A DNA stretch of 64,000 nucleotides from sequence record NC_070966.1. The stretch is one strand, 5' to 3'. Shown in pieces: positions 3 to 64,000 of this stretch; positions within the stretch are counted from its first letter, which is position 1; each line of letters opens with the position of its first letter. Under the pieces are notes generated by a model that saw nothing but the letters and a program-made list of their open reading frames with translations, had not been told where the DNA came from and did no database searches. The position numbers and the translations under genes are program-made.

Positions 3-1043
3 GAACGAGTTAAGACCAAGATCAAAGACATTGAATGGAATCTGTCAAGAACTGGTCGTATGGTTCCTAAGGCAATCTTAGAACCTGTCAATCTTGCAGG
101 AGCTACAATCTCCAGAGCGACCTTGAATAACTATGAATACTTGACTGAACTCGGATGCGGTCCAGGATCTGAAGTTGAGATCATCCGATCTAATCTGATT
201 ATCCCTAAGATTGTGAAGGTTCTGAATAAGGAACCTGCAAGACGACCACTTGTATGCAACAGGTGCTATGAAGTACTGAAGGTCGTAAAGACTGATTTGA
301 TGTGCGTCAATGAGATGTGCGCATGTCGAGTTATGTCGTCAGTCAATCGTCTCTTCTCATTGACGAAACCTGATGGTATCGGTGGTAGTGCTTGTACGAC
401 TCTCGTTAATAGTCTTGCAATCGATAGTTGGGAGACTGCTAAGTCAAGATTCATAGATCAAGACGTGAGTGGTTTGGATAAGATCTTCGGTACCAAGACT
501 GAGATTAAGATTCAAGAAATGATCTCGAAGATCAAGAATCTGAATCAGATAATCACTGTCAAGGGTGTACTTTATCTCGCGAATATTCCTAAGCTTGGTA
601 ACTCAAGTATAGGTCCTATCGCTGAGAATGTCTCAGTGGATGCATTCTTGACTGCTATCCGTGAAGATGAGATTCCTGTTTCATGGAAGCAATACTGTGC
701 ATCTGAGCCAGCATTCAACAATCTTCGTAAGTCGATTCAACGAATTCGACTGATATTAGACTTCCTTAATTGGAAGGTTAATGCTGTAGTGAAAGTCGAG
801 AAAGTAGAAACTCGTCTGAAGTACTGCATGACTGGAACATTCAGTAAGAAGAGATCTGAGCTACAAACTGAGTTCTCTAAGTTAGGTCTTGAATTCGTCG
901 ATGTCAAGAAAGCTCAAGTCTTGATGTGGGATGGAGAAGATCAGAAGAATAAGTATCATACTGCCAAGAAGCTCGGGATTGAGATTATCTCCGAGAAGGA
1001 ATTCAGAAGTCGATATGTCCAATCAGAAGAAGCCATCGTATAA
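3..1043 (+). CDS. ligA: NAD-dependent DNA ligase, C-terminal part (5' end lies before the window)
   Basis: Frame is open from base 3: IEWNLSRTGRMVPKAILEPVNLAGATISRATLNN matches the LigA OB-fold motif; Cys4 zinc finger (CNRC...CAC); C-terminal BRCT-like CMTGTFSKKRSEL. Confidence 0.9.
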   Translation, partial: ERVKTKIKDIEWNLSRTGRMVPKAILEPVNLAGATISRATLNNYEYLTELGCGPGSEVEIIRSNLIIPKIVKVLNKEPARRPLVCNRCYEVLKVVKTDLMCVNEMCACRVMSSVNRLFSLTKPDGIGGSACTTLVNSLAIDSWETAKSRFIDQDVSGLDKIFGTKTEIKIQEMISKIKNLNQIITVKGVLYLANIPKLGNSSIGPIAENVSVDAFLTAIREDEIPVSWKQYCASEPAFNNLRKSIQRIRLILDFLNWKVNAVVKVEKVETRLKYCMTGTFSKKRSELQTEFSKLGLEFVDVKKAQVLMWDGEDQKNKYHTAKKLGIEIISEKEFRSRYVQSEEAIV

Positions 1044-2669: not shown

Positions 2670-2968
2670 CAAAGATTGTTAACATGCATAAGGATCGTCA
2701 CTTTGATATCGACATTACTCGAAATGGAATGTACGGTAATCCATTTATGATAGGTCGAGATGGTGATCGTGTCCAGGTCATCAATAAATTTAGAGACTGG
2801 ATCAAAGGAATTAGTTGTCAAGAAGTGGAGCCAATTCGACGTAGAAGCATAGTTGAAAGCCTTCCTTCTATGAAGGATAAGGTACTAGGATGTGTATGTT
2901 CTCCTAATCCTTGTCATGGTGATGTTTATGTGGATTTCATTGAAGGAGTTGAAGAGATAATATGTTGA
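2663..2968 (+). CDS. DUF4326-like protein
   Basis: DIDITRNGMYGNPF...LGCVCSPNPCHGDV pattern; ATG at 2663. Confidence 0.75.
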   Translation: MVTKIVNMHKDRHFDIDITRNGMYGNPFMIGRDGDRVQVINKFRDWIKGISCQEVEPIRRRSIVESLPSMKDKVLGCVCSPNPCHGDVYVDFIEGVEEIIC

Positions 2969-5182: not shown

Positions 5183-5491
5183 ATGAGCAAATATCGTACA
5201 GTACATACTCTCAAGACGCTTGCACCATTCTACTATGCTGTAATGAATGGTGAGAAGACATTTGAGATTCGTAAGAATGACCGACAGTTTCAGAAGGGTG
5301 ATCTTCTAGTCCTTGATCTTTATGAACCAGACAATCAAACAAAGAATACTATGATTAGACCAGTATCCGTTTATTGTGAAGTAACATGGGTACTTGCTGG
5401 AGGTCAGTTTGGTATCGAGCTAGGATATGCAGGATTGGCTATTCGTATTCTTAACTCACAGGAATTTAATGAATTAAGAGGTCCTTTCTGA
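5183..5491 (+). CDS. ASCH/DUF3850-like protein
   Basis: LKTLAPFYYAVMNGEKTFEIRKNDRQFQKGDLLVL signature. Confidence 0.8.
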   Translation: MSKYRTVHTLKTLAPFYYAVMNGEKTFEIRKNDRQFQKGDLLVLDLYEPDNQTKNTMIRPVSVYCEVTWVLAGGQFGIELGYAGLAIRILNSQEFNELRGPF

Positions 5492-5498
5492 GATTATT

Positions 5499-5527
5499 CA
5501 GCGAAATTCGGCTCTGAGAGCCTTCCT
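5499..5527 (+). promoter_or_regulatory. Bipartite motif CAGCGAA-N13-AGCCTTCCT, copy A
   Basis: CAGCGAA attcggctctgag AGCCTTCCT, intergenic, about 30 nt before the HD gene ATG; identical blocks and spacing at 17106-17134 and 63730-63758. Confidence 0.7.
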
Positions 5528-5559: not shown

Positions 5560-6231
5560 ATGAAAGACATTGTCTTTAATCCTCTCCTTAAGATCTCTAG
5601 TGTGAACCGGTACTCCGGAGTTTATCTGACCAAGAATGAGTCAGTTTCAGATCACACTACTCAAACTGGATTACTATGTATTCTAGTCGGCAACGAGATC
5701 AATAAACGTCTTGCGAAATTGAAATCCTCTGTTAGAGTGAATCTCGAGAAATTAGCCTACAAGGCTTTAATCCACGATCTCGAGGAATCCAAGACTTGTG
5801 ACACTCCTAGAAATGTTAAATACTTCAATGACTTGATTTATCAAGAATTTGAGAGAATGGGTGACCAGGTTGTTCTTGAACTATCTGAACTCTATGAATT
5901 TCCTGAGCTCTATGAGCAATGGAAAAATGCTAAGGATAAGACTCTAGAAGGGTATATTCTTAAGATCTGCGATATGATTCATGTCGTACGTAAACTAGTT
6001 GATGAAGTTGTACTTCTTGGAAATCTTAACATGCTTCAGGTAGCACTGGAGTTGAAGGATCATCTGAAGAAGACTCACGATTATATTAATAAGATTACAG
6101 ATCTACCTGCTGAAGCGATTGACGTCTTTAATGAATTGACGATTTTCTCATTGGATACCGTTAACTATATTCTTAAGAAACATCAATCGGAGATTACAGA
6201 TTATAACTTTACATCTCTGAAGAGCGCATAA
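5560..6231 (+). CDS. HD-domain 5'-deoxynucleotidase / dNTPase (YfbR/DatZ-like)
   Basis: RY...ESVSDH, LIHDLEE...D.P..VKY, ICD metal ligands. Confidence 0.8.
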   Translation: MKDIVFNPLLKISSVNRYSGVYLTKNESVSDHTTQTGLLCILVGNEINKRLAKLKSSVRVNLEKLAYKALIHDLEESKTCDTPRNVKYFNDLIYQEFERMGDQVVLELSELYEFPELYEQWKNAKDKTLEGYILKICDMIHVVRKLVDEVVLLGNLNMLQVALELKDHLKKTHDYINKITDLPAEAIDVFNELTIFSLDTVNYILKKHQSEITDYNFTSLKSA

Positions 6232-9200
6232 TGTCCTTAGAAATTGAATCCATTATTAACAAAGTTGATCTGACTAGTGATGTTCGTGTATGTCACATGT
6301 GCCCACTAGCTGAGAAGTTTGGTGGATGTGATAATCTTGGACGAGTATCTTTTGAGATTGTAGGTCAGAATCCTAAGGTTCTACTTGTAGGTGAAGCACC
6401 TGCAGCTGAGGATCTGAAATCTGAACGACCATTCAGTAGTCAGTCTGGTTCATTCTTGAGAATGGCGATGGCTGAAATTGGCATTAATGATTACGCTCTA
6501 GCGAATGTGATCATGTGTCAACCTAAGAGTGTAAATATCTACACTCCGACTCCTGAAGAGTCCGCTCACTGTAAAGCACATATTCAAAGATTTGTTGAAA
6601 AGTACAAACCTGAGACAGTCATCTTGCTCGGACGAGGAGCATATGAAGTCATTCTACCAGAGAGTTACTTCGCAGGTCAGTCAGTTACGAATGTAACCAA
6701 GAAGAAGGCTATCGAAATTGATGGTGTACGTTATGGAGCAGCATTTCATCCATCGTATATCTTCCGTAATGGTGGTAAAGAATCACCACAGTACATCGAC
6801 TTCTTGAATCGATTGAGACGACTGACTCAGAATAGTGTTGATGCAGAATTCATCGTACCGTTTAAGATCGTTAATCTCGATCAACTAGATGAGACTCTCG
6901 AAGAGTTTGATGTCTACAAAGAACTAGGCTTCGACTATGAAGGTACCTCGCTTGATCCGTATGACGTCAATTATCAGGTTCTCGGACTTGGTATGTCATC
7001 GATGGACAAGGCAGTTTATATCGACTTTCATCGAGAGCCTACTCAAGAAGAAAAGAATAAGATATCTGACTTCATTCGTAAGAAGCAGATGTGGGTTTAT
7101 AACGTCAACTATGAAACCAAAGTTACATGGTCTAAGTTGAGTAATGATCTTATTCGATTCCACGATGCGATGACTCTTGTAAAGATCGACTGTTCTCCTG
7201 GATCACTGAAGGACAATGCTCGTAAATATCTGAATGCAGAAATCTGGGAAGAGATCGTAGGTAACTTGACTACCTTGTTCTACGATATCTTCCAATTTAT
7301 GAAGAAGATTGAGGAGAAATCTCCTAAACTATATAATGCTTGTAGACAAGCTAATATGGAGGCGATCTATCTTCTTAAGGAAGATACTGCTGAGAAAATC
7401 ACTGGTGGTAAGAAGAATCCTAAGGTTACGAGATATCGTACCAAGCAGGCAGATCATGCAGACTACATATCTGCTAAGATCTCTGCACTTAGAGAATTCT
7501 GCTCTGATGAAGATATCCAACGTGGATTTACTAAGTTTCCTTACGAGTGGGCAGCTGTTCCTCCGAAGATTCTAGGTGAATACTGCTGCTACGACTCTTA
7601 TTACACACTAGGTCTTAAGAATCATCTGTGGGATAAGTATAAGAGCGTTTACCAGTATTATATCACCCAAGGGTGGCTAGGCTCTACGATGGAGAGCTAT
7701 GGTCTGAATTGGGATGATGATAAAGCTTCTGAGCATGAACGATTCTATCTCGTTGAAGCTACGACATGCTTGAATCAGATCATTCAGAAATTGGATTTTG
7801 GTGAGAAAACTCTTGATATTCATACAAGAGCAAGCATGATTTTCAATGACTCTAGTCTTCCTGATGCTAGGAAACTCATTGATCTGAAAGGTATCTTTAA
7901 TCCAGGTACTCCAGATAAACTTAAACAGAAACCCTTCTGGGATAAGTACGTAACTGACTTTACGACTGCAATATCCATCTATCTTGTTCTCAGTGAACAG
8001 ATTCTAATGTCTCCAATCATTCCTGACCAAGCGATTGAGTTAGTCGATCGTCAAGATCTCAATAAAGCTATTGAGAATTTGATGTCAGTAGATTGGACTA
8101 AGTACGATGGAGTTGATCTTAAGACTGCCAAGTCAATTCAGAAATTGATGATGGATCTTATTGGTACACTCGATGAGAAGATCGGATGGAAGCTATATGC
8201 ATTCAGAAGTGATGTTCTAGAGTGGCAATATAAAGCTCACGAAACGTACGGTGGACTAGATATCGACAATCGTGAGACTTGGACTCCTGAGTTCGAGTTG
8301 TTATATCTTCTGAGAAGATATAAAAAGGTTGAGAAGAGTAAGAATACGTACATCAATGGTAAGGTAGGTAGAGCACGAGTATGGTTGTCGACAGTCGATG
8401 ATTACCAGAAGCCTCCTGTTCGACTGAAGCGTTACTTTGATGTTATGGAAGAGAGACAGTGGAAGAAGTATGAACTTCAGCATAACGAGAGATGGATTCT
8501 TGATACAGAATTCAATGTTGCTGGTGCAAATACTAAACGATGGAAAGCAGCTATTCATACTGTTCCATGGGGATCAGAACTCCGAGAGATCTATGCATCT
8601 CGTTGGTGGGATGGTCTGTTTATGCATTACGACTACTCTCAGGCAGAAGTTCGAATTCTAGCAGCTATCTCTCAGGATAGAGCACTACTGGAAGCATTCG
8701 CTGATCCTGATACTGACATTCACATGTTCGTTGCATCTCGAATCTGGAAGAAAGATCCTAAGGATGTGACTCCAGCTGAGCGTCGATATGCTAAGGTCTG
8801 CTCGTTCTCGATTTTGTACGGTAAGTCTATCGAAGGATTTGCTACTGAACATACCAAGGGTGATGTTGCAGCAGCTAAGCGTATCTTTGATGACTTCTAT
8901 GCAGCATTCCCTCAAGTTAAGGAGTGGATTGAGAAACAGCATAGAGATGCGAAAGTATCTGGTAAGGTCTTTACCTTATTCGGAGATCCTCTGTATCTTG
9001 ATATGTCGGACCCTAATGGTGCTATGCGTGATGCTCAAAACTGGCCAATTCAGTCCTCGAGCAGCTGTGTAGCAGGATGGGCTATCTGGATGAACTACGA
9101 GTTTTCTAGAAATAGAAACATTCCGATTCTTCCAATGGTCTTTACTCACGACTCTCACGATATGGAATTCAGATGTCAACATCTATTCGAGACGATTGAT

Positions 9201-9560
9201 ACTGTTCTCGAAACTGCAGTTGATCTACCTAAGCGTAGATTTAATCTTCCGATGAAGATCGACTGGGAAATCGGTGTTAATCAGTCTGATGCAATTGAGT
9301 TCAAAGAAACATCTCGATTTGATGAAGGTCGAGGTCGTACGTATCACTTTGAATGCAATGAAAATGCAATGATGCCTGTATTCGATCGTCTAAAGAACTA
9401 CTTTGACATCGAATATGAAGTCACTTCTAGAGAGACTGAGAGAGCATCGCTGAAAGAAATGTTCGTTGCAAGACGAGCATTCTCTAAGTATCTTGGTACA
9501 GATGTAACCGTCGTAGGTGGTAACCTCAAACTAGTGAAGAAAAATGGGATAAAAATATGA
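6231..9560 (+). CDS. polA: Family A DNA polymerase with N-terminal family-4 uracil-DNA glycosylase-like domain and 3'-5' exonuclease
   Basis: UDG4: CHMC, VGEAP, ANVIMC, FHPS. Exo: FDYE, YNVNYE, YCCYD. Pol: DYSQAEVRILA, RRYAKVCSFSILYG, NWPIQS, THDS. Confidence 0.92.
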   Translation: MSLEIESIINKVDLTSDVRVCHMCPLAEKFGGCDNLGRVSFEIVGQNPKVLLVGEAPAAEDLKSERPFSSQSGSFLRMAMAEIGINDYALANVIMCQPKSVNIYTPTPEESAHCKAHIQRFVEKYKPETVILLGRGAYEVILPESYFAGQSVTNVTKKKAIEIDGVRYGAAFHPSYIFRNGGKESPQYIDFLNRLRRLTQNSVDAEFIVPFKIVNLDQLDETLEEFDVYKELGFDYEGTSLDPYDVNYQVLGLGMSSMDKAVYIDFHREPTQEEKNKISDFIRKKQMWVYNVNYETKVTWSKLSNDLIRFHDAMTLVKIDCSPGSLKDNARKYLNAEIWEEIVGNLTTLFYDIFQFMKKIEEKSPKLYNACRQANMEAIYLLKEDTAEKITGGKKNPKVTRYRTKQADHADYISAKISALREFCSDEDIQRGFTKFPYEWAAVPPKILGEYCCYDSYYTLGLKNHLWDKYKSVYQYYITQGWLGSTMESYGLNWDDDKASEHERFYLVEATTCLNQIIQKLDFGEKTLDIHTRASMIFNDSSLPDARKLIDLKGIFNPGTPDKLKQKPFWDKYVTDFTTAISIYLVLSEQILMSPIIPDQAIELVDRQDLNKAIENLMSVDWTKYDGVDLKTAKSIQKLMMDLIGTLDEKIGWKLYAFRSDVLEWQYKAHETYGGLDIDNRETWTPEFELLYLLRRYKKVEKSKNTYINGKVGRARVWLSTVDDYQKPPVRLKRYFDVMEERQWKKYELQHNERWILDTEFNVAGANTKRWKAAIHTVPWGSELREIYASRWWDGLFMHYDYSQAEVRILAAISQDRALLEAFADPDTDIHMFVASRIWKKDPKDVTPAERRYAKVCSFSILYGKSIEGFATEHTKGDVAAAKRIFDDFYAAFPQVKEWIEKQHRDAKVSGKVFTLFGDPLYLDMSDPNGAMRDAQNWPIQSSSSCVAGWAIWMNYEFSRNRNIPILPMVFTHDSHDMEFRCQHLFETIDTVLETAVDLPKRRFNLPMKIDWEIGVNQSDAIEFKETSRFDEGRGRTYHFECNENAMMPVFDRLKNYFDIEYEVTSRETERASLKEMFVARRAFSKYLGTDVTVVGGNLKLVKKNGIKI

Positions 9561-10635: not shown

Positions 10636-10673
10636 AGGCGCTTACTTGTTGGGTAAATGGGTGCAGTTAGGCT

Positions 10674-10707
10674 CTTGGAGGGATTCTTATTCGGTGAGCC
10701 CTCCAAG
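10674..10707 (+). promoter_or_regulatory. GC-rich hairpin upstream of the second sigma-like gene
   Basis: CTTGGAGGG...CCCTCCAAG 9-bp stem, no U-tract. Confidence 0.5.
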
Positions 10708-10730: not shown

Positions 10731-11387
10731 ATGGCTAGCGATAGACAGATGAAAGGTTACATCTGGGGAGAGCAAATCCTGGATCATGCTCACATTGAGC
10801 ATTATGCAAGGGCGATGAGATCCGATGATGTACGTACCGAGGAGTACTGGTACCAGGCAGTATTTCATGGGAAGAACCACTCTAAGGTTCTTCAGTCGGA
10901 AGTCTTTCATAAGAAAATCCGCAACAACGTTACAAATAAAGTAGAAGTTGAGACTCTGGTTTCTACTTCTAACTCTGACGTCGTTAATGATGTTCTAGCA
11001 GAGGAGAGAAAGAATGAAGTAAAATATTCTCGAGTTATCGAGGATGATAAGGTCGGTAATATGTCCGACTATCTTCCCGATGCAACTGTTGGGTTCTCAG
11101 TTATTATCAGAGAAATAGCTGACAAATGCAACGATGATGAAATCAAGGTCCTGAGCTACTTTGTATGTCAGGAACATCTGGATAATATCCTATTCGAGGG
11201 GAATTCGATTCATTCATCAAACGATCGCTTCAATCGTACGATCCTAGGTATCTGGGAAAAGAATGTGAAGAGCATCAATGATCTGAATCGATTTGTAGGT
11301 ACTCGTGCTCGTGCTGATAAAGCTAGGTGGAGACTCTGCAATCTCTTGAAGAAGGAGTATCCTGAACTCTTGTCAGGAAAACGATGA
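10731..11387 (+). CDS. Putative sigma-like transcription factor; paralogue of 9557..10288
   Basis: Shared blocks with 9557..10288; C-terminal SINDLNRFVGTRARADKARWRLCNLLK is HTH-like; lies just upstream of rpoC. Confidence 0.4.
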   Translation: MASDRQMKGYIWGEQILDHAHIEHYARAMRSDDVRTEEYWYQAVFHGKNHSKVLQSEVFHKKIRNNVTNKVEVETLVSTSNSDVVNDVLAEERKNEVKYSRVIEDDKVGNMSDYLPDATVGFSVIIREIADKCNDDEIKVLSYFVCQEHLDNILFEGNSIHSSNDRFNRTILGIWEKNVKSINDLNRFVGTRARADKARWRLCNLLKKEYPELLSGKR

Positions 11388-15022: not shown

Positions 15023-15220
15023 ATGCAAGACCTATCTCAACTATGTGAAGTTGAGATGGAGAAGTTAGTTGAAATACTAATGAGATCGACTCACTTGACA
15101 CTCGACGGTGTTGAGCTGAGTCGATCTCATGAATATCATAATAGCCCATCTGTCTCTACAATTAAAACTCATAAAGTCCTTGATGACTCATACATTACAG
15201 TTAGACTGAAATATGTATAA
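15023..15220 (+). CDS. Hypothetical protein
   Basis: Short ORF 3 nt after the rpoC stop. Confidence 0.5.
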   Translation: MQDLSQLCEVEMEKLVEILMRSTHLTLDGVELSRSHEYHNSPSVSTIKTHKVLDDSYITVRLKYV

Positions 15221-15926
15221 CTTGCAATACGATGATGGAATTCTTAAATCAAATAGGGAGTCTCTCGTAAACATACGAGCTCCATTCTTCAAACGGATTG
15301 ATCGACGATCTCGCAAGTCGTCCATCGAGAGATTAATGATCTCACCTGATACAACAAGAAATTGTAGTCAGATTAAGAGATTTCTCGTTCCGTTCAACGA
15401 TAAGTACTTGTACAGCATGCATGTGACTTATCGTGACGACTTAAAGTGTCAATCTATTTATGACACTAACAAGTCTCTCAAGCGAATCCTCCGATCTAAA
15501 ATGTTAATGTCAGCTGTGAACAGGATAAATGAGTATCCTCAACTCAAAGCAGACATATTGTCTGTAATCAAGCTTGTAGTTAATTCTTGGGAGTTTGATG
15601 GTCTTATCACAGACATTGAATGGCTCCAGGATGAAAATCTACTGGATACTGTGATATCTAAGTGGAAACTGAAGAAGTACGAATCCTCTACAGAGCGAGG
15701 GTCAGTGATCAATCTCTTAATAAAGAGTTTTGATGGAGTTCCACTTAATCTTCTATCTCATCTAGAGATGAAGAAAATCAGTATTGAGGATACTGACATT
15801 GAGGACGTTAAGTTTAAATGTCCTCTGATATTAATGCGATCGAATTCATCTTGTGCAGGATTCATATCTAAGTCCTTGGATAAAGGACTACCTGTGAGTC
15901 TGTTCAAGATTGATATAAAAGAGTAA
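15213..15926 (+). CDS. Hypothetical protein
   Basis: 237-aa ORF, last gene of the + strand arm. Confidence 0.7.
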   Translation: MYNLQYDDGILKSNRESLVNIRAPFFKRIDRRSRKSSIERLMISPDTTRNCSQIKRFLVPFNDKYLYSMHVTYRDDLKCQSIYDTNKSLKRILRSKMLMSAVNRINEYPQLKADILSVIKLVVNSWEFDGLITDIEWLQDENLLDTVISKWKLKKYESSTERGSVINLLIKSFDGVPLNLLSHLEMKKISIEDTDIEDVKFKCPLILMRSNSSCAGFISKSLDKGLPVSLFKIDIKE

Positions 15927-16737: not shown

Positions 16738-17037
16738 TTAGAGACCAGCAGCCTTGCGCTTTCTCATAGTCATTTGACGCTTACGAGAGATAGCAGCTTG
16801 CTGTCCTCTCTTCTTACGAGCACCCATCTTCGCAGCCTTACGCTTAGCGATGATCTCACCGGCACTCATCTTGACGCAAGTCTTACCATCAATCTTGTAA
16901 CCTGGAGGGCAATCAAGAATAACACTCTTGGCTCCACCTCTGAATGTTACTTTCTTCTTAGGAGCAGCTTCACTAGCTGGAATAGAAGACTCATAGTAAG
17001 CATCAATTTTAGTGATCAAATCTGCAGATTTAGACAT
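16738..17037 (-). CDS. Prohead core protein, T4 gp68-like
   Basis: MSKSADLITKI leader; basic C-terminus AAISRKRQMTMRKRKAAGL resembles the gp68 end (RKRKKALKRRKALGL). Confidence 0.6.
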   Translation of the reverse strand: MSKSADLITKIDAYYESSIPASEAAPKKKVTFRGGAKSVILDCPPGYKIDGKTCVKMSAGEIIAKRKAAKMGARKKRGQQAAISRKRQMTMRKRKAAGL

Positions 17038-17105
17038 AATGTACATCCATTTTAGTTTATTTAATGAGGATTATCACTTTACACAATTATAAAGTGTGCA
17101 CAAAG

Positions 17106-17134
17106 AGGAAGGCTTATGTCGCCTTCCTTCGCTG
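17106..17134 (-). promoter_or_regulatory. Bipartite motif copy C, superimposed on a terminator-like hairpin
   Basis: Minus strand CAGCGAA ggaaggcgacata AGCCTTCCT; GGAAGGC/GCCTTCC stem followed by TCTTT. Confidence 0.7.
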
Positions 17135-17149
17135 AATCCTTAGCTTTAT

Positions 17150-18994
17150 TTACGTTATTAACTTATTCTTCTCACTAGCAGGTATCCCATTAGCGATTCG
17201 ATCCATCATTATAGGATACGGATGAACACCATCTTGTGTAACACTAGGTCGTACAATAGATCCTACAGGTAAAATTGCAGCACGTGGAATTGAGAGTATA
17301 AGAGTATTTCCACTAACACTTAGAATAGTAGTCGTAGATAGTCTAGCAATTCCATCAGGCGCTGCATAAGTATTGATTTCTTGTTCTCCTCTAAACAAGT
17401 TAGCATTAGCAACTTGAATAGATGAATAAGTTTCTACTCCATCAGTACCAGCTTGGACAGTGACAGTTGTGCTAGGTAGTTCTAACGTACCTGGCCATGC
17501 ACCACCCTTTACACTTGATACCCATGCGTAATAAGTATCAATAGAATCATCGCAACATGATGATGTCTTTGCTAAGATATCATTTCTCAGGCGCCATTTA
17601 CCACTATTGTCTGTTCCATCAGCAGGCCATGAATTCTGAGATGAGTATGTCTGGAATTCTGCCTGAAGATATAGATTACTAGCAGTGATCGACCCTGTAG
17701 CAGGAGTCGTAGCAGACCCTGCAAAGTTATAAGTGAAACTATTTGGACCTGTGACTGTTATAATCACATTACCATTGTACTCAGTTTGAGTAGCTCCACC
17801 AATCGTAACTGTTTGACCTGTTACAAGTCCGTTAGTACCAGAAGCGATAGCCGCAGTTACAACAGTTCCTACAGATGTCAATGTGACAGTACGTGTAGTC
17901 ACTGTACGACCGAGAGGGGTCGTCGCAACGATCTTAACACCTGGATAACGTGCACGTAGTCTGGTAACCAAGCTGCGGTAATTGGTATTGAAGAATGTCG
18001 TATAAACTGTACTAGTATCATTCTGACCCATCTGATTCAAGATAACAGTAAAAGGTTTCTTATTGTTATTGAATGCAGTGATTTCATCAAGAATTGCCCA
18101 TCGACGAGTAGCAATCGTACTACCACTACCTGTAAGTTCGAGTACAGAGTGTGATCCTGGCATACCAATCATAAAGTGAGGAAGACGTCCAATACCGTCT
18201 GCTTTATCTAGCCATCTACGTAACCATCCTAAGTTACCTCGAGCATCAGCACCTGCACTATATTCTTGACGAGCTTCACCGATACTATCAACGACTGCTA
18301 GTACTACAGGTCGACCATCCCAGTCACCTTTAGCAACCATAAAATCAGGACCGTAGTATGCTGGTTGAGTTACTAGAATGTAATTTATATCGAGTGATGC
18401 AGTGCAGTCTGCAAGTGGTGTATCTTTATAAGCTAGAAGTGTATTGAGATCACTAGCGCCCCATATTCTTTCACCACGATGTTTCTGAATACGATATACT
18501 GGCCAGACTTTCTCACCTACTGCAGTATGATAGAAAGTCCAAATTTCCATCTCACTTTCAGGAGCAACATCGCGTAGAACTAATTCATCCGTCCATGCAC
18601 CATTACTCTGGTCAGCAATTGTTATAGTATCTAGACCTGAGAACTTGCACTGATAGAATACGCCAGCAACTTTGATAAACAAAGCATCGACTACTACAGA
18701 GTTACCAGGAGTACCAATTGTACCAGTTACAACTGTTTCTTGAGGTGAATTTCCACCTTCTGTTGCAGCGAATCCAGATAGATGGAATTTGAATGAACGT
18801 GTTGCATATGAAGGAGTATTTACAATAATCTTACTGCAAAGATAGTTCGTGCCAGATGCTGCTGTAACTAAGTTACCAGATGGTACACGATTTCTAGTTG
18901 CAAAGAACATATAGCGACTAGGATCAACTGGACGAGCTCTTCGTCCATTAAATGCAGTATTAACAATTTTTAATGATTTTTTGGATATAGCCAT
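17150..18994 (-). CDS. SGNH/GDSL-like esterase with inserted beta-rich domain, probable virion-associated enzyme
   Basis: VDSIG (block I), GQND (block III), DGVHP (block V). Confidence 0.7.
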   Translation of the reverse strand: MAISKKSLKIVNTAFNGRRARPVDPSRYMFFATRNRVPSGNLVTAASGTNYLCSKIIVNTPSYATRSFKFHLSGFAATEGGNSPQETVVTGTIGTPGNSVVVDALFIKVAGVFYQCKFSGLDTITIADQSNGAWTDELVLRDVAPESEMEIWTFYHTAVGEKVWPVYRIQKHRGERIWGASDLNTLLAYKDTPLADCTASLDINYILVTQPAYYGPDFMVAKGDWDGRPVVLAVVDSIGEARQEYSAGADARGNLGWLRRWLDKADGIGRLPHFMIGMPGSHSVLELTGSGSTIATRRWAILDEITAFNNNKKPFTVILNQMGQNDTSTVYTTFFNTNYRSLVTRLRARYPGVKIVATTPLGRTVTTRTVTLTSVGTVVTAAIASGTNGLVTGQTVTIGGATQTEYNGNVIITVTGPNSFTYNFAGSATTPATGSITASNLYLQAEFQTYSSQNSWPADGTDNSGKWRLRNDILAKTSSCCDDSIDTYYAWVSSVKGGAWPGTLELPSTTVTVQAGTDGVETYSSIQVANANLFRGEQEINTYAAPDGIARLSTTTILSVSGNTLILSIPRAAILPVGSIVRPSVTQDGVHPYPIMMDRIANGIPASEKNKLIT

Positions 18995-20303: not shown

Positions 20304-20328
20304 AATGCTATCCTTAATGAGATATAAA

Positions 20329-55549: not shown

Positions 55550-55610
55550 AATAAATCCTCTATTTTATATTCAGAATGAGTAGCAATCTACTTATTATAA
55601 ATATAAAGAA

Positions 55611-63317: not shown

Positions 63318-63376
63318 TAGTATTATTACATTATATAAATGCCCTTATAAACTGGGCGCTACTGAAAATTGATAAA

Positions 63377-63729: not shown

Positions 63730-63758
63730 CAGCGAATTGAGCTCTCAAAAGCCTTCCT
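63730..63758 (+). promoter_or_regulatory. Bipartite motif CAGCGAA-N13-AGCCTTCCT, copy B
   Basis: CAGCGAA ttgagctctcaaa AGCCTTCCT, followed by CTACG as near copy A. Confidence 0.7.
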
Positions 63759-63947
63759 CTACGTAATGCCAGGACCCTCCTTATTATCACATGACATTCC
63801 ACACGAGATTGCATTCGCATTATTCTTATTATAAGAATTGTAATAGACTTTATTACTTATCTCGATTTTATCCTACCTTATGGAATTTCATTTTCTCCTT
63901 ATTAAAATAAAAATTTTACGAATTTTCACGATCTGACTTTCTTAATT

Positions 63948-64000
63948 AGTTATTATATTATAATAATAATTATAATTATTATATAATTATTATAATAAGA
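63948..64000. repeat. Almost pure A/T tract of TTATAAT-like palindromic units
   Basis: ttattatattataataataattataattattatataattattataataaga. Confidence 0.7.

Follow-up and report, generated by a model that had tools for sequence, protein, structure and literature searches.

A two-box sequence family with fixed spacing in the Rhizobium jumbo phage RHph_TM30 is probably a class of phage-specific promoters

Promoters at which phages redirect the host RNA polymerase include the T4 middle promoters (MotA/AsiA), the T4 late promoters, which have a single TATAAATA element at -10 and depend on the gp55-like sigma, and the SPO1 gp28 promoters (AGGAGA-N17-TTTNTTT). The sigma70 promoter itself has a TTGACA-like hexamer at -35 and a TATAAT-like hexamer at -10, placed 17 +/- 1 bp apart, and ECF-sigma promoters are of the GGAAC-N16/17-CGTT type. 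phiKZ and AR9/PBS2 encode beta-like as well as beta'-like subunits, which are split and have diverged strongly, and use short, AT-rich promoters. The consensus of T7-type promoters is contiguous over 23 bp and comes in class II and class III variants, and the promoter of the N4 virion RNA polymerase is a hairpin at a set position, with a stem of 5-7 bp and a loop of 3 nt. AR9 and the YerA41-group phages have DNA with non-canonical thymine positions.

The element described here was predicted from three exact copies of CAGCGAA-N13-AGCCTTCCT in a stretch of 64,000 nucleotides (the window), which matches the final 64 kb of Rhizobium phage RHph_TM30 (MN988521; window position = record position - 143,623) with 100% identity. 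RHph_TM30 is a jumbo phage of the Kleczkowskaviridae (Cuauhnahuacvirus) with a circular record of 207,623 bp. Its + strand genes span record 84 to 159,549 (window 15,926) and its - strand genes record 159,549 to 206,889 (window 63,266); a divergent non-coding region of about 0.8 kb is made up of the final 734 nt of the window and the initial 83 nt of the record. The three copies were found just where, and on the strands on which, they had been predicted (Table 1), and the coordinates of the flanking genes bear out that all are intergenic. Scanning the window with up to three mismatches gave four matches against 0.18 expected, a number that none of 100 shuffles reached. The copies are thus genuine, but they are not a set of three: they belong to one (class 1) of at least two related classes that together have about 50 sites in the genome.

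A scan of the whole genome, a check proposed with the original prediction, showed massive over-representation. An iterated position weight matrix (PWM) found 31-32 class-1 sites genome-wide against 0.1-0.4 in first-order Markov nulls; these PWM statistics are partly circular, the model having been trained on the sites that it scores, and 9-mer counts are unaffected by this. The 9-mer AGCCTTCCT (box B) occurs 26 times on the + strand against 0.46 expected (Poisson P ~3e-36) and twice on the - strand against 0.69 expected; in Markov simulations the two strands combined averaged 1.0 occurrences and never exceeded 3. Box B minus its first base, GCCTTCCT, is the top enriched intergenic 8-mer, with 20 of its 28 sense-strand copies in the intergenic 6.5% of the genome. 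The class-1 consensus is aTT-nAGCGAA-nT-nAgG-nTc-nnnn-AGCCTTCCT-T-n-TT, in which six positions of box B are invariant in 31/31 sites. Spacing is equally strict: a genome scan found GCGAA-N13-AGCCTTCC 13 times and every other spacing from N9 to N18 zero times. The + gene block holds 30-31 sites, all on the + strand, and the - block holds one (copy B), on the - strand; 100% of class-1 sites are co-oriented with the local genes. We regard it as almost certain that this family of cis-elements is real and under selection.

Table 1. Features of the window, in window coordinates
Feature	Position	Strand	Description	PWM score
Degenerate class-1 copy	738..766	+	CAACGAA-N13-AGACTTCCT, 2 mismatches	27.0
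Box B alone	2858..2866	+	AGCCTTCCT without recognisable box A	
Class-1 copy A	5499..5527	+	CAGCGAA-N13-AGCCTTCCT	39.8
Class-2 motif	10658..10697	+	TGGGTGCAGTTAGGCTCTTGGAGGGATTCTTATTCGGTGA; upstream of the 218-aa gene preceding beta'	49.9
Conserved 218-aa protein	10731..11387	+	Immediately upstream of beta'; syntenic in all relatives	
RNA polymerase beta' homologue, 1127 aa	11636..15019	+	Pfam Rpb1 domains 1-5	
Conserved 237-aa protein	15213..15926	+	Downstream of beta'; syntenic in all relatives	
Class-1 copy B	17106..17134	-		43.7
Class-1 copy C	63730..63758	+	Exact copy in divergent non-coding region	

How does class 1 compare with the systems described above? The original prediction had set aside the sigma70 (TTGACA/TATAAT) and T4 late (TATAAATA) promoters, rightly, for the consensus carries neither. 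A sigma70-type promoter was rejected because the 31-site consensus, AGCGAA-N13-AGCCTTCCT, has no TATAAT-like hexamer and its spacing never varies, and a T4-type late promoter because that element is missing from the motif and Pfam gave no gp55-like match. Like the middle and late promoters of T4 and SPO1, class 1 is a non-sigma70 sequence present in dozens of co-oriented copies immediately upstream of genes, with different classes for different gene blocks, and its architecture can be read as bipartite (SPO1-like) or as a dominant -10-like core (T4-late-like). Unlike theirs, its sequence is unrelated, its spacing is absolutely fixed and its "spacer" contains a conserved central block; moreover, TM30 has no detectable MotA, AsiA, gp55 or sigma homologue and has a beta' gene instead. 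With phiKZ and AR9/PBS2 (non-virion enzymes) TM30 shares jumbo size, RNA polymerase subunit gene(s) and a short promoter consensus of its own, but it has one full-length beta' and no beta, and its element is a GC-containing bipartite one of ~36 bp. The long, rigidly spaced consensus and the two classes with a common core and different specificity positions recall T7-type promoters; unlike those, TM30 has its conservation in separated blocks and no single-subunit RNA polymerase gene was found. ECF-sigma promoters likewise have two short boxes, very strict spacing and a GC-containing -10, but the class-1 boxes do not match theirs and Pfam found no ECF-like protein in the phage. Pattern scans of bacterial genome and metagenome contigs, a weak test, gave single, taxonomically scattered matches among those listed, at chance level across diverse bacterial genomes, with no host enrichment and no sign of a host regulon.

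The setting of copy A is as the original prediction had it. This copy lies 7 nt past the stop of the ASCH gene (5183-5491) and 32 nt ahead of the ATG of an HD 5'-deoxynucleotidase gene (5560-6231), and it faces the gene string HD, UDG-PolA, ... beta', of which the HD gene is the first. The other two orientations had been misread. Copy B was supposed to point outwards, but it is directed at the three final - strand genes, all of them within the window; it is the sole class-1 copy in the - strand (structural) block and lies 15 nt past the stop of a GDSL-hydrolase gene (17150-18994, -) and 68 nt ahead of the annotated start of a prohead-core gene (16738-17037, -), or 59 nt from an upstream in-frame ATG of the latter. 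Copy C, supposed to face the head genes, points away from these - strand genes and across the record origin toward gene 001, which begins 325 nt downstream; it stands first in the + block, and upstream of it there is no co-oriented gene over 47.8 kb. Two weaker matches are of uncertain standing: the degenerate copy, which lies inside the 3' part of the NAD-ligase gene, 248 nt ahead of the primase start, and may or may not be functional, and the lone box B, which lies within a small ORF 95 nt ahead of a dCMP-deaminase gene and may or may not be a working element.

It is of note that an AT-only low-complexity tract (TTATTATATTATAATAATAATTATAATTATTATATAATTATTATAATAAG) runs from window 63940-64000 into record 1-10, ~190 nt downstream of copy C, and is located where cumulative GC skew reaches its minimum. 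Possible identities are a DNA-unwinding element, an origin or a packaging end. As a side possibility, suggested by analogy with T4 oriF/oriG, copy C, with this tract after it, could be an origin-priming promoter.

Relative to genes, 19 of the 32 class-1 sites end 9-61 nt ahead of an annotated start codon or tRNA, and 10/32 end 26-33 nt ahead of an annotated start (mode 29); several lie within ORFs or are distant from the next annotated gene. Five sites precede tRNA genes: one is 9 nt from tRNA-Ser, one 17 nt from tRNA-Asn, two form a tandem pair before tRNA-Lys, and one lies 735 nt before tRNA-Gln, within a homing-endonuclease gene. The sites 9 and 17 nt ahead of tRNA genes show that this is no translational element. 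Motif starts cluster at upstream stop codons as well (-2 to +7 in nine sites), because many spacers have the form "stop, motif, ~29 nt, ATG", and position alone therefore cannot tell a place ahead of the following gene from one behind the preceding gene.

Might the motif then act in RNA? That it often starts right at the upstream stop codon and flanks tRNA genes, in a phage that encodes RNA-related proteins (ASCH/DUF3850 and TROVE), would fit a cleavage or processing site of a sequence-specific endoribonuclease, or the site of a phage RNA-binding protein, acting to split polycistronic messages and release tRNAs. But copy C has no upstream co-oriented transcript on which such a signal could act, the sites have no common secondary structure, and two boxes at an invariant 13-nt spacing (~two helical turns) with a free spacer suggest recognition of duplex DNA. 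Moreover, the + block must have a promoter for its first gene, and no motif other than these two classes recurs in that region. A signal at the RNA level is accordingly improbable.

Two sites are followed by possible RNA genes. Past the site at record 64835 (L002 14835-14945; record 64835-64945) comes a 16-bp hairpin with a U-run (z = -5.0), at a distance of 65 nt that contains no ORF. Site and hairpin are a candidate promoter-terminator pair for a putative phage small RNA of roughly 90 nt, and an unannotated 61-aa ORF (record 64970-65155) comes after the hairpin. A tRNA-like 3' half (GTTCAAGTCTAGCC...CCA) follows the site at record 133702 (L003 33790-33900); neither ARAGORN nor Rfam made a call there. 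A weak partial tRNA match (33.9 bits; L003 39945-40009) immediately precedes the TROVE/Ro-like gene, for whose product it might be a partner resembling Y RNA.

Folding of all 32 sites, each taken from the final two bases of box A through 26 nt beyond box B, gave a mean z-score of -1.1, and the predicted structures vary among sites with no common stem. Stems in which the spacer pairs with the AGCC block, pointed out in the original prediction, are real in copies A-C and are not general across the 31-site family. Searching Rfam gave no match in the window and only tRNAs in two loci covering record 50001-150000. A structured RNA family or RNase III site was rejected on these grounds (no Rfam match, no shared fold), as was a hairpin promoter of the N4 virion-RNAP type, since stems occur in some sites only, loops range from 3-16 nt and registers differ. 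Because there is no shared fold, the conservation lies in primary sequence at fixed spacing, for which protein-DNA recognition is expected; as far as the letters can tell, primary sequence kept at a fixed spacing of about two turns is the signature of a protein that reads duplex DNA.

An intrinsic (rho-independent) terminator was also rejected: there is no common stem, a U-run is found at few sites, and genuine terminators occur elsewhere. A broader version would make the motif a terminator or antitermination (nut/boxA-like) signal for whichever polymerase the phage uses, and a pyrimidine-rich sequence (CCTTCCTTCTT) just past stop codons is in keeping with this, as are sites within or beside strong hairpins, for example that at record 81589 (-25.7 kcal/mol, then TTTT). 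Most sites, however, lack a hairpin or U-run, and ordinary hairpin terminators stand elsewhere, rarely beside the motif (two of 20 simple terminators abut a class-1 site). The sites 9-17 nt ahead of tRNA genes precede genes that must be transcribed, and copy C has nothing upstream to terminate; lacking an upstream co-oriented gene, it can be neither a terminator nor a processing site for an upstream message. We consider a termination or antitermination signal very unlikely.

Unbiased 8-mer enrichment revealed a second intergenic motif, TAGGTkCAsTTAgGGTCcTnnAgGGATTCTTCTTTGAAGG (class 2), with 18 sites, all on the + strand and all co-oriented with the local genes. Examples are at record 27, 14352, 58583, 107296 and 142708; one site is just upstream of gene 001 (ATG at record 84), and 14 of the 18 are in the left 62 kb, a region of small ORFs. 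Downstream of class-2 sites come GC-rich stems, which could form 5' hairpins, then a Shine-Dalgarno sequence and ATG. In a PWM offset scan classes 1 and 2 align at offsets +1 and +2 only; they have in common the central TTAGGgTC block and a downstream TTCyTtcTT block, and are set apart by the upstream box and the 5' portion of box B. From its sequence and placement we take class 2 to be a candidate early promoter class.

The common TTAGGgTC block could be the site of a common factor, and class 1 might then be an operator, bound by a phage transcription regulator (activator or repressor) and adjoining separate promoters; a weak inverted-repeat flavour at some sites, where spacer AGGCT/AGCGT is partly complementary to AGCCT, points the same way. 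Against an operator, the site is asymmetric and strictly orientation-dependent in 50/50 sites, inspection by eye found no sigma70-like -35/-10 pair beside the sites, and in most of the short (~60-70 nt) intergenic spacers the motif is the only conserved sequence. This makes an operator decidedly improbable.

The - strand block has ordinary hairpin terminators and a different recurrent element, TTTATA(T/A), of whose 14 occurrences five are in the intergenic 3.5% of the block; TATAAATA itself does not occur there. TTTATA(T/A) sites (-) at 17087-17093, 20322-20328, 55595-55607 and 63333-63339 come after hairpin terminators and upstream of the prohead core, a pectin-lyase-fold gene, the major capsid protein and gene 384. 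Its likeness to the T4 element makes it a candidate late promoter.

Relatives in GenBank are near-identical phages only (at least 98.8%), the next beta' matches being ~28%, and IMG/VR gave no relatives by beta' and single chance matches only by motif. We therefore compared contigs of uncultured relatives found through the protein database, with beta' 55, 53, 50, 41, 40 and 37% identical. Down to 40% beta' identity these keep the gene order helicase, [ASCH], [HD], PolA, three small genes, beta', a 65-aa and a ~235-aa gene, the last followed by a convergent - block. Conservation in related phages, the second check proposed, was borne out: box B is kept at the orthologous site in relatives with beta' 41-55% identical. 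Before the HD/PolA operon the 55% relative (L023) has CGGCGAA-N13-AGCCTTCCT with a different spacer sequence (PWM score 31.8), the 53% relative (L025, GC 32%) has AGCCTTCTT at the orthologous spacer, and the 41% relative (L028) has AGCCTTCCT there, directly past the helicase stop; in a four-way alignment of this spacer box B is the only solid block. L023 also has an equivalent of copy B, CAGCGAA-N13-AGCCTTCTA at 12685-12657(-), upstream of the matching small prohead-core-like gene. The 39.3 kb of the 41% relative contain AGCCTTCCT six times on the sense strand and never on the other, against 0.10 expected, and a class-2-like AAGGGyTTCT..TTTG precedes the ~217-aa gene in L023, L025, L028 and L032. 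Neither motif was found in the 37% relative (L033, a metagenome contig) or in E. coli phage IME392. Box B is thus the conserved core, and box A is common only to TM30 and the 55% relative.

Retention of the core at orthologous positions next to diverged spacers indicates that the boxes are themselves under selection. Homing endonucleases abound in the genome and are neighbours of some sites, but a repeat that is selfish or serves recombination and plays no part in expression, whether associated with homing endonucleases or marking a PeSL-like cassette boundary, is the least credible alternative of all, given that the core stays in place in relatives down to 41% beta' identity despite diverged spacers and that the distance to start codons is constrained.

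Two other conserved or repeated sequences emerged from these comparisons. About 40 nt upstream of the prohead-core gene are near-identical in TM30 (window 17037-17080, -) and L023 (12567-12610, -); this block, GATAATCCTCATTAA.TA.A..AAAATGGATGT....ATATGTCTA, is much more conserved than the spacer around it and is explained either by an in-frame start further upstream (ATGGATGT) or by a conserved 5' leader. IME392 has a repeated bipartite spacer motif of its own, CCGCTCTTTT-N~10-AAAGGCTGTTAA, ~30 nt ahead of ATGs (spacers L006 2048-2116, 5405-5792 and 21268-21331; second repeat AAGCCCGTTCTTTTGGGTGG); its first box resembles what we take to be a boxA/nut sequence.

What reads the motif? The original prediction assigned it to the phage's own RNA polymerase, helped by two sigma-like genes, and neither part of that assignment stood up. 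The beta' homologue is genuine: it retains an intact Zn finger and NADFDGD motif and shares 33% identity with E. coli RpoC, and tblastn of E. coli RpoC against the genome gave 5e-143. It is also alone. A tblastn search with E. coli RpoB over all 207.6 kb gave only E > 1, and Pfam found no Rpb2 domains among the large hypothetical proteins, so that the phage has no self-sufficient polymerase; it may encode a very divergent beta subunit somewhere. The promoter of a complete phage-encoded multisubunit RNA polymerase was rejected for want of a beta-like subunit. A single-subunit RNA polymerase gene is neither annotated nor present among the large hypothetical proteins.

The supposed sigma-like genes, which flank beta' (the 218-aa and 237-aa genes of Table 1), had no match in Pfam, PHROGs, NCBIfam, a PDB profile search or a fold search. 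Profiles of five sequences found no sigma signature among PDB sequences for the neighbours of beta', Foldseek found no fold match for the AF2 model of the 218-aa protein (pLDDT 59), and the model of the 237-aa protein was of too low quality for a fold search. Among 84 hypothetical proteins of 110-340 aa from the + block, Pfam detected no sigma domains. A sigma-dependent promoter served by the neighbouring genes was accordingly rejected, there being no sigma70 region 2/4 or gp55-like domains in them. That the 218-aa protein is a specificity factor is pure speculation, and beta' is for us a candidate component of the motif-reading enzyme.

The uncultured relatives also have a lone beta' in the same gene neighbourhood, and E. 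coli phages IME392 and EP_H11 have it in split form. In the GenBank phage collection, tblastn found beta' homologues in YerA41, Carin-5, RP13, EP_H11 and IME392 (28% in IME392), all of them from the group with UDG-fused PolA and T-hypermodified DNA. The GenBank start of the 237-aa gene (EVB93_329; record 158959) looks 41 codons too short by comparison with relatives, in which a 228-245-aa protein overlaps the preceding 65-aa gene by 8 nt, an arrangement that fits the ATG at window 15213.

The DNA polymerase gene of the same string (window 6231-9560, +) encodes an N-terminal UDG domain fused to a family-A polymerase. This fusion is a signature of the YerA41/Carin-5 group, which has T-hypermodified DNA (PMC13697223, PMC12686479), and RHph_TM30 has been placed among the phages in which the two go together (PMC12686479, PMC13697223, PMC9023294). 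From this signature, thymines in the motif may carry modifications in virion DNA. These three papers do not address transcription or promoters, and we found no prior description in the literature of the class-1 motif or of the lone beta'.

Taken together, the evidence favors reading the class-1 motif as the recognition sequence of a phage-specific promoter class of RHph_TM30, to which we give a probability of about 0.75. As such a class should be, the motif is over-represented and strand-specific; it is intergenic, co-oriented and at a constrained distance upstream of genes, RNA genes included; and it is kept at orthologous sites in diverged relatives. What stands of the original prediction is thus a probable phage-specific promoter with its fixed-spacing, non-sigma70, two-box site; what lacks support is the pairing with a complete phage polymerase and sigma genes. 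We infer promoter identity, transcription start position and temporal class alike from sequence.

In the mechanism that we propose for this promoter class, box B followed by the T-rich T-n-TT would be the invariant core. One site ends 9 nt before the mature 5' end of a tRNA, so transcription would start within ~9 nt downstream of box B, and a start at that distance would make box B a -10-like element. Box A (AGCGAA), exactly 13 nt upstream, would make a contact of the -35 or upstream type; with ~20.5 bp from centre to centre, about two turns of the helix, both boxes would lie on one face of the DNA. The weaker central TTAGGgTC block would be the part common to both classes.

Class 1 would drive DNA-replication, nucleotide-metabolism and tRNA genes, among them the HD-PolA-beta' string from copy A, a set that suggests "middle" genes. 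The placement of class 2, mainly among the small ORFs of the left 62 kb and before gene 001, suggests "early" genes. The - strand structural genes have neither class, copy B excepted, and have hairpin terminators and the T4-late-like TTTATAT element instead. The simplest scheme would then be early (class 2), middle (class 1) and late (T4-late-like).

The reader would be the host RNA polymerase remodelled by phage proteins, either the lone beta' or a specificity factor that we did not recognise, or both. A more specific version is possible but doubtful: class 1, and perhaps class 2, may be promoters of a hybrid polymerase in which phage beta' takes the place of host beta' on host alpha2-beta-omega and works with a neighbouring specificity protein, which would be the product of the conserved 218-aa, 65-aa or 237-aa gene. 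Such an enzyme would transcribe presumably thymidine-hypermodified DNA from C-rich, non-TATAAT -10 elements, and the class-2 site ahead of the 218-aa/beta' cluster would activate the machinery by which class 1 is then read.

Class 1 most probably belongs to a known category, that of phage-specific promoters. What is unusual is the context, in which beta' stands alone with no sigma, the DNA is probably modified and two classes are built on one scaffold. No transcription programme has been described for the Kleczkowskaviridae, for the uncultured relatives, or for the wider group with UDG-PolA and T-hypermodified DNA (YerA41, Carin-5, SP-15, RP13, IME392). A consensus, two related classes, ~50 mapped sites and a conserved core now predict transcription units, unannotated small RNAs included. 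They also make the lone beta' gene approachable by experiment, since the class-1 element can serve as a DNA probe for fishing out the polymerase or factor that reads it. If the reader is indeed a hybrid of host and phage polymerase, this would be a new viral way of taking over bacterial transcription.
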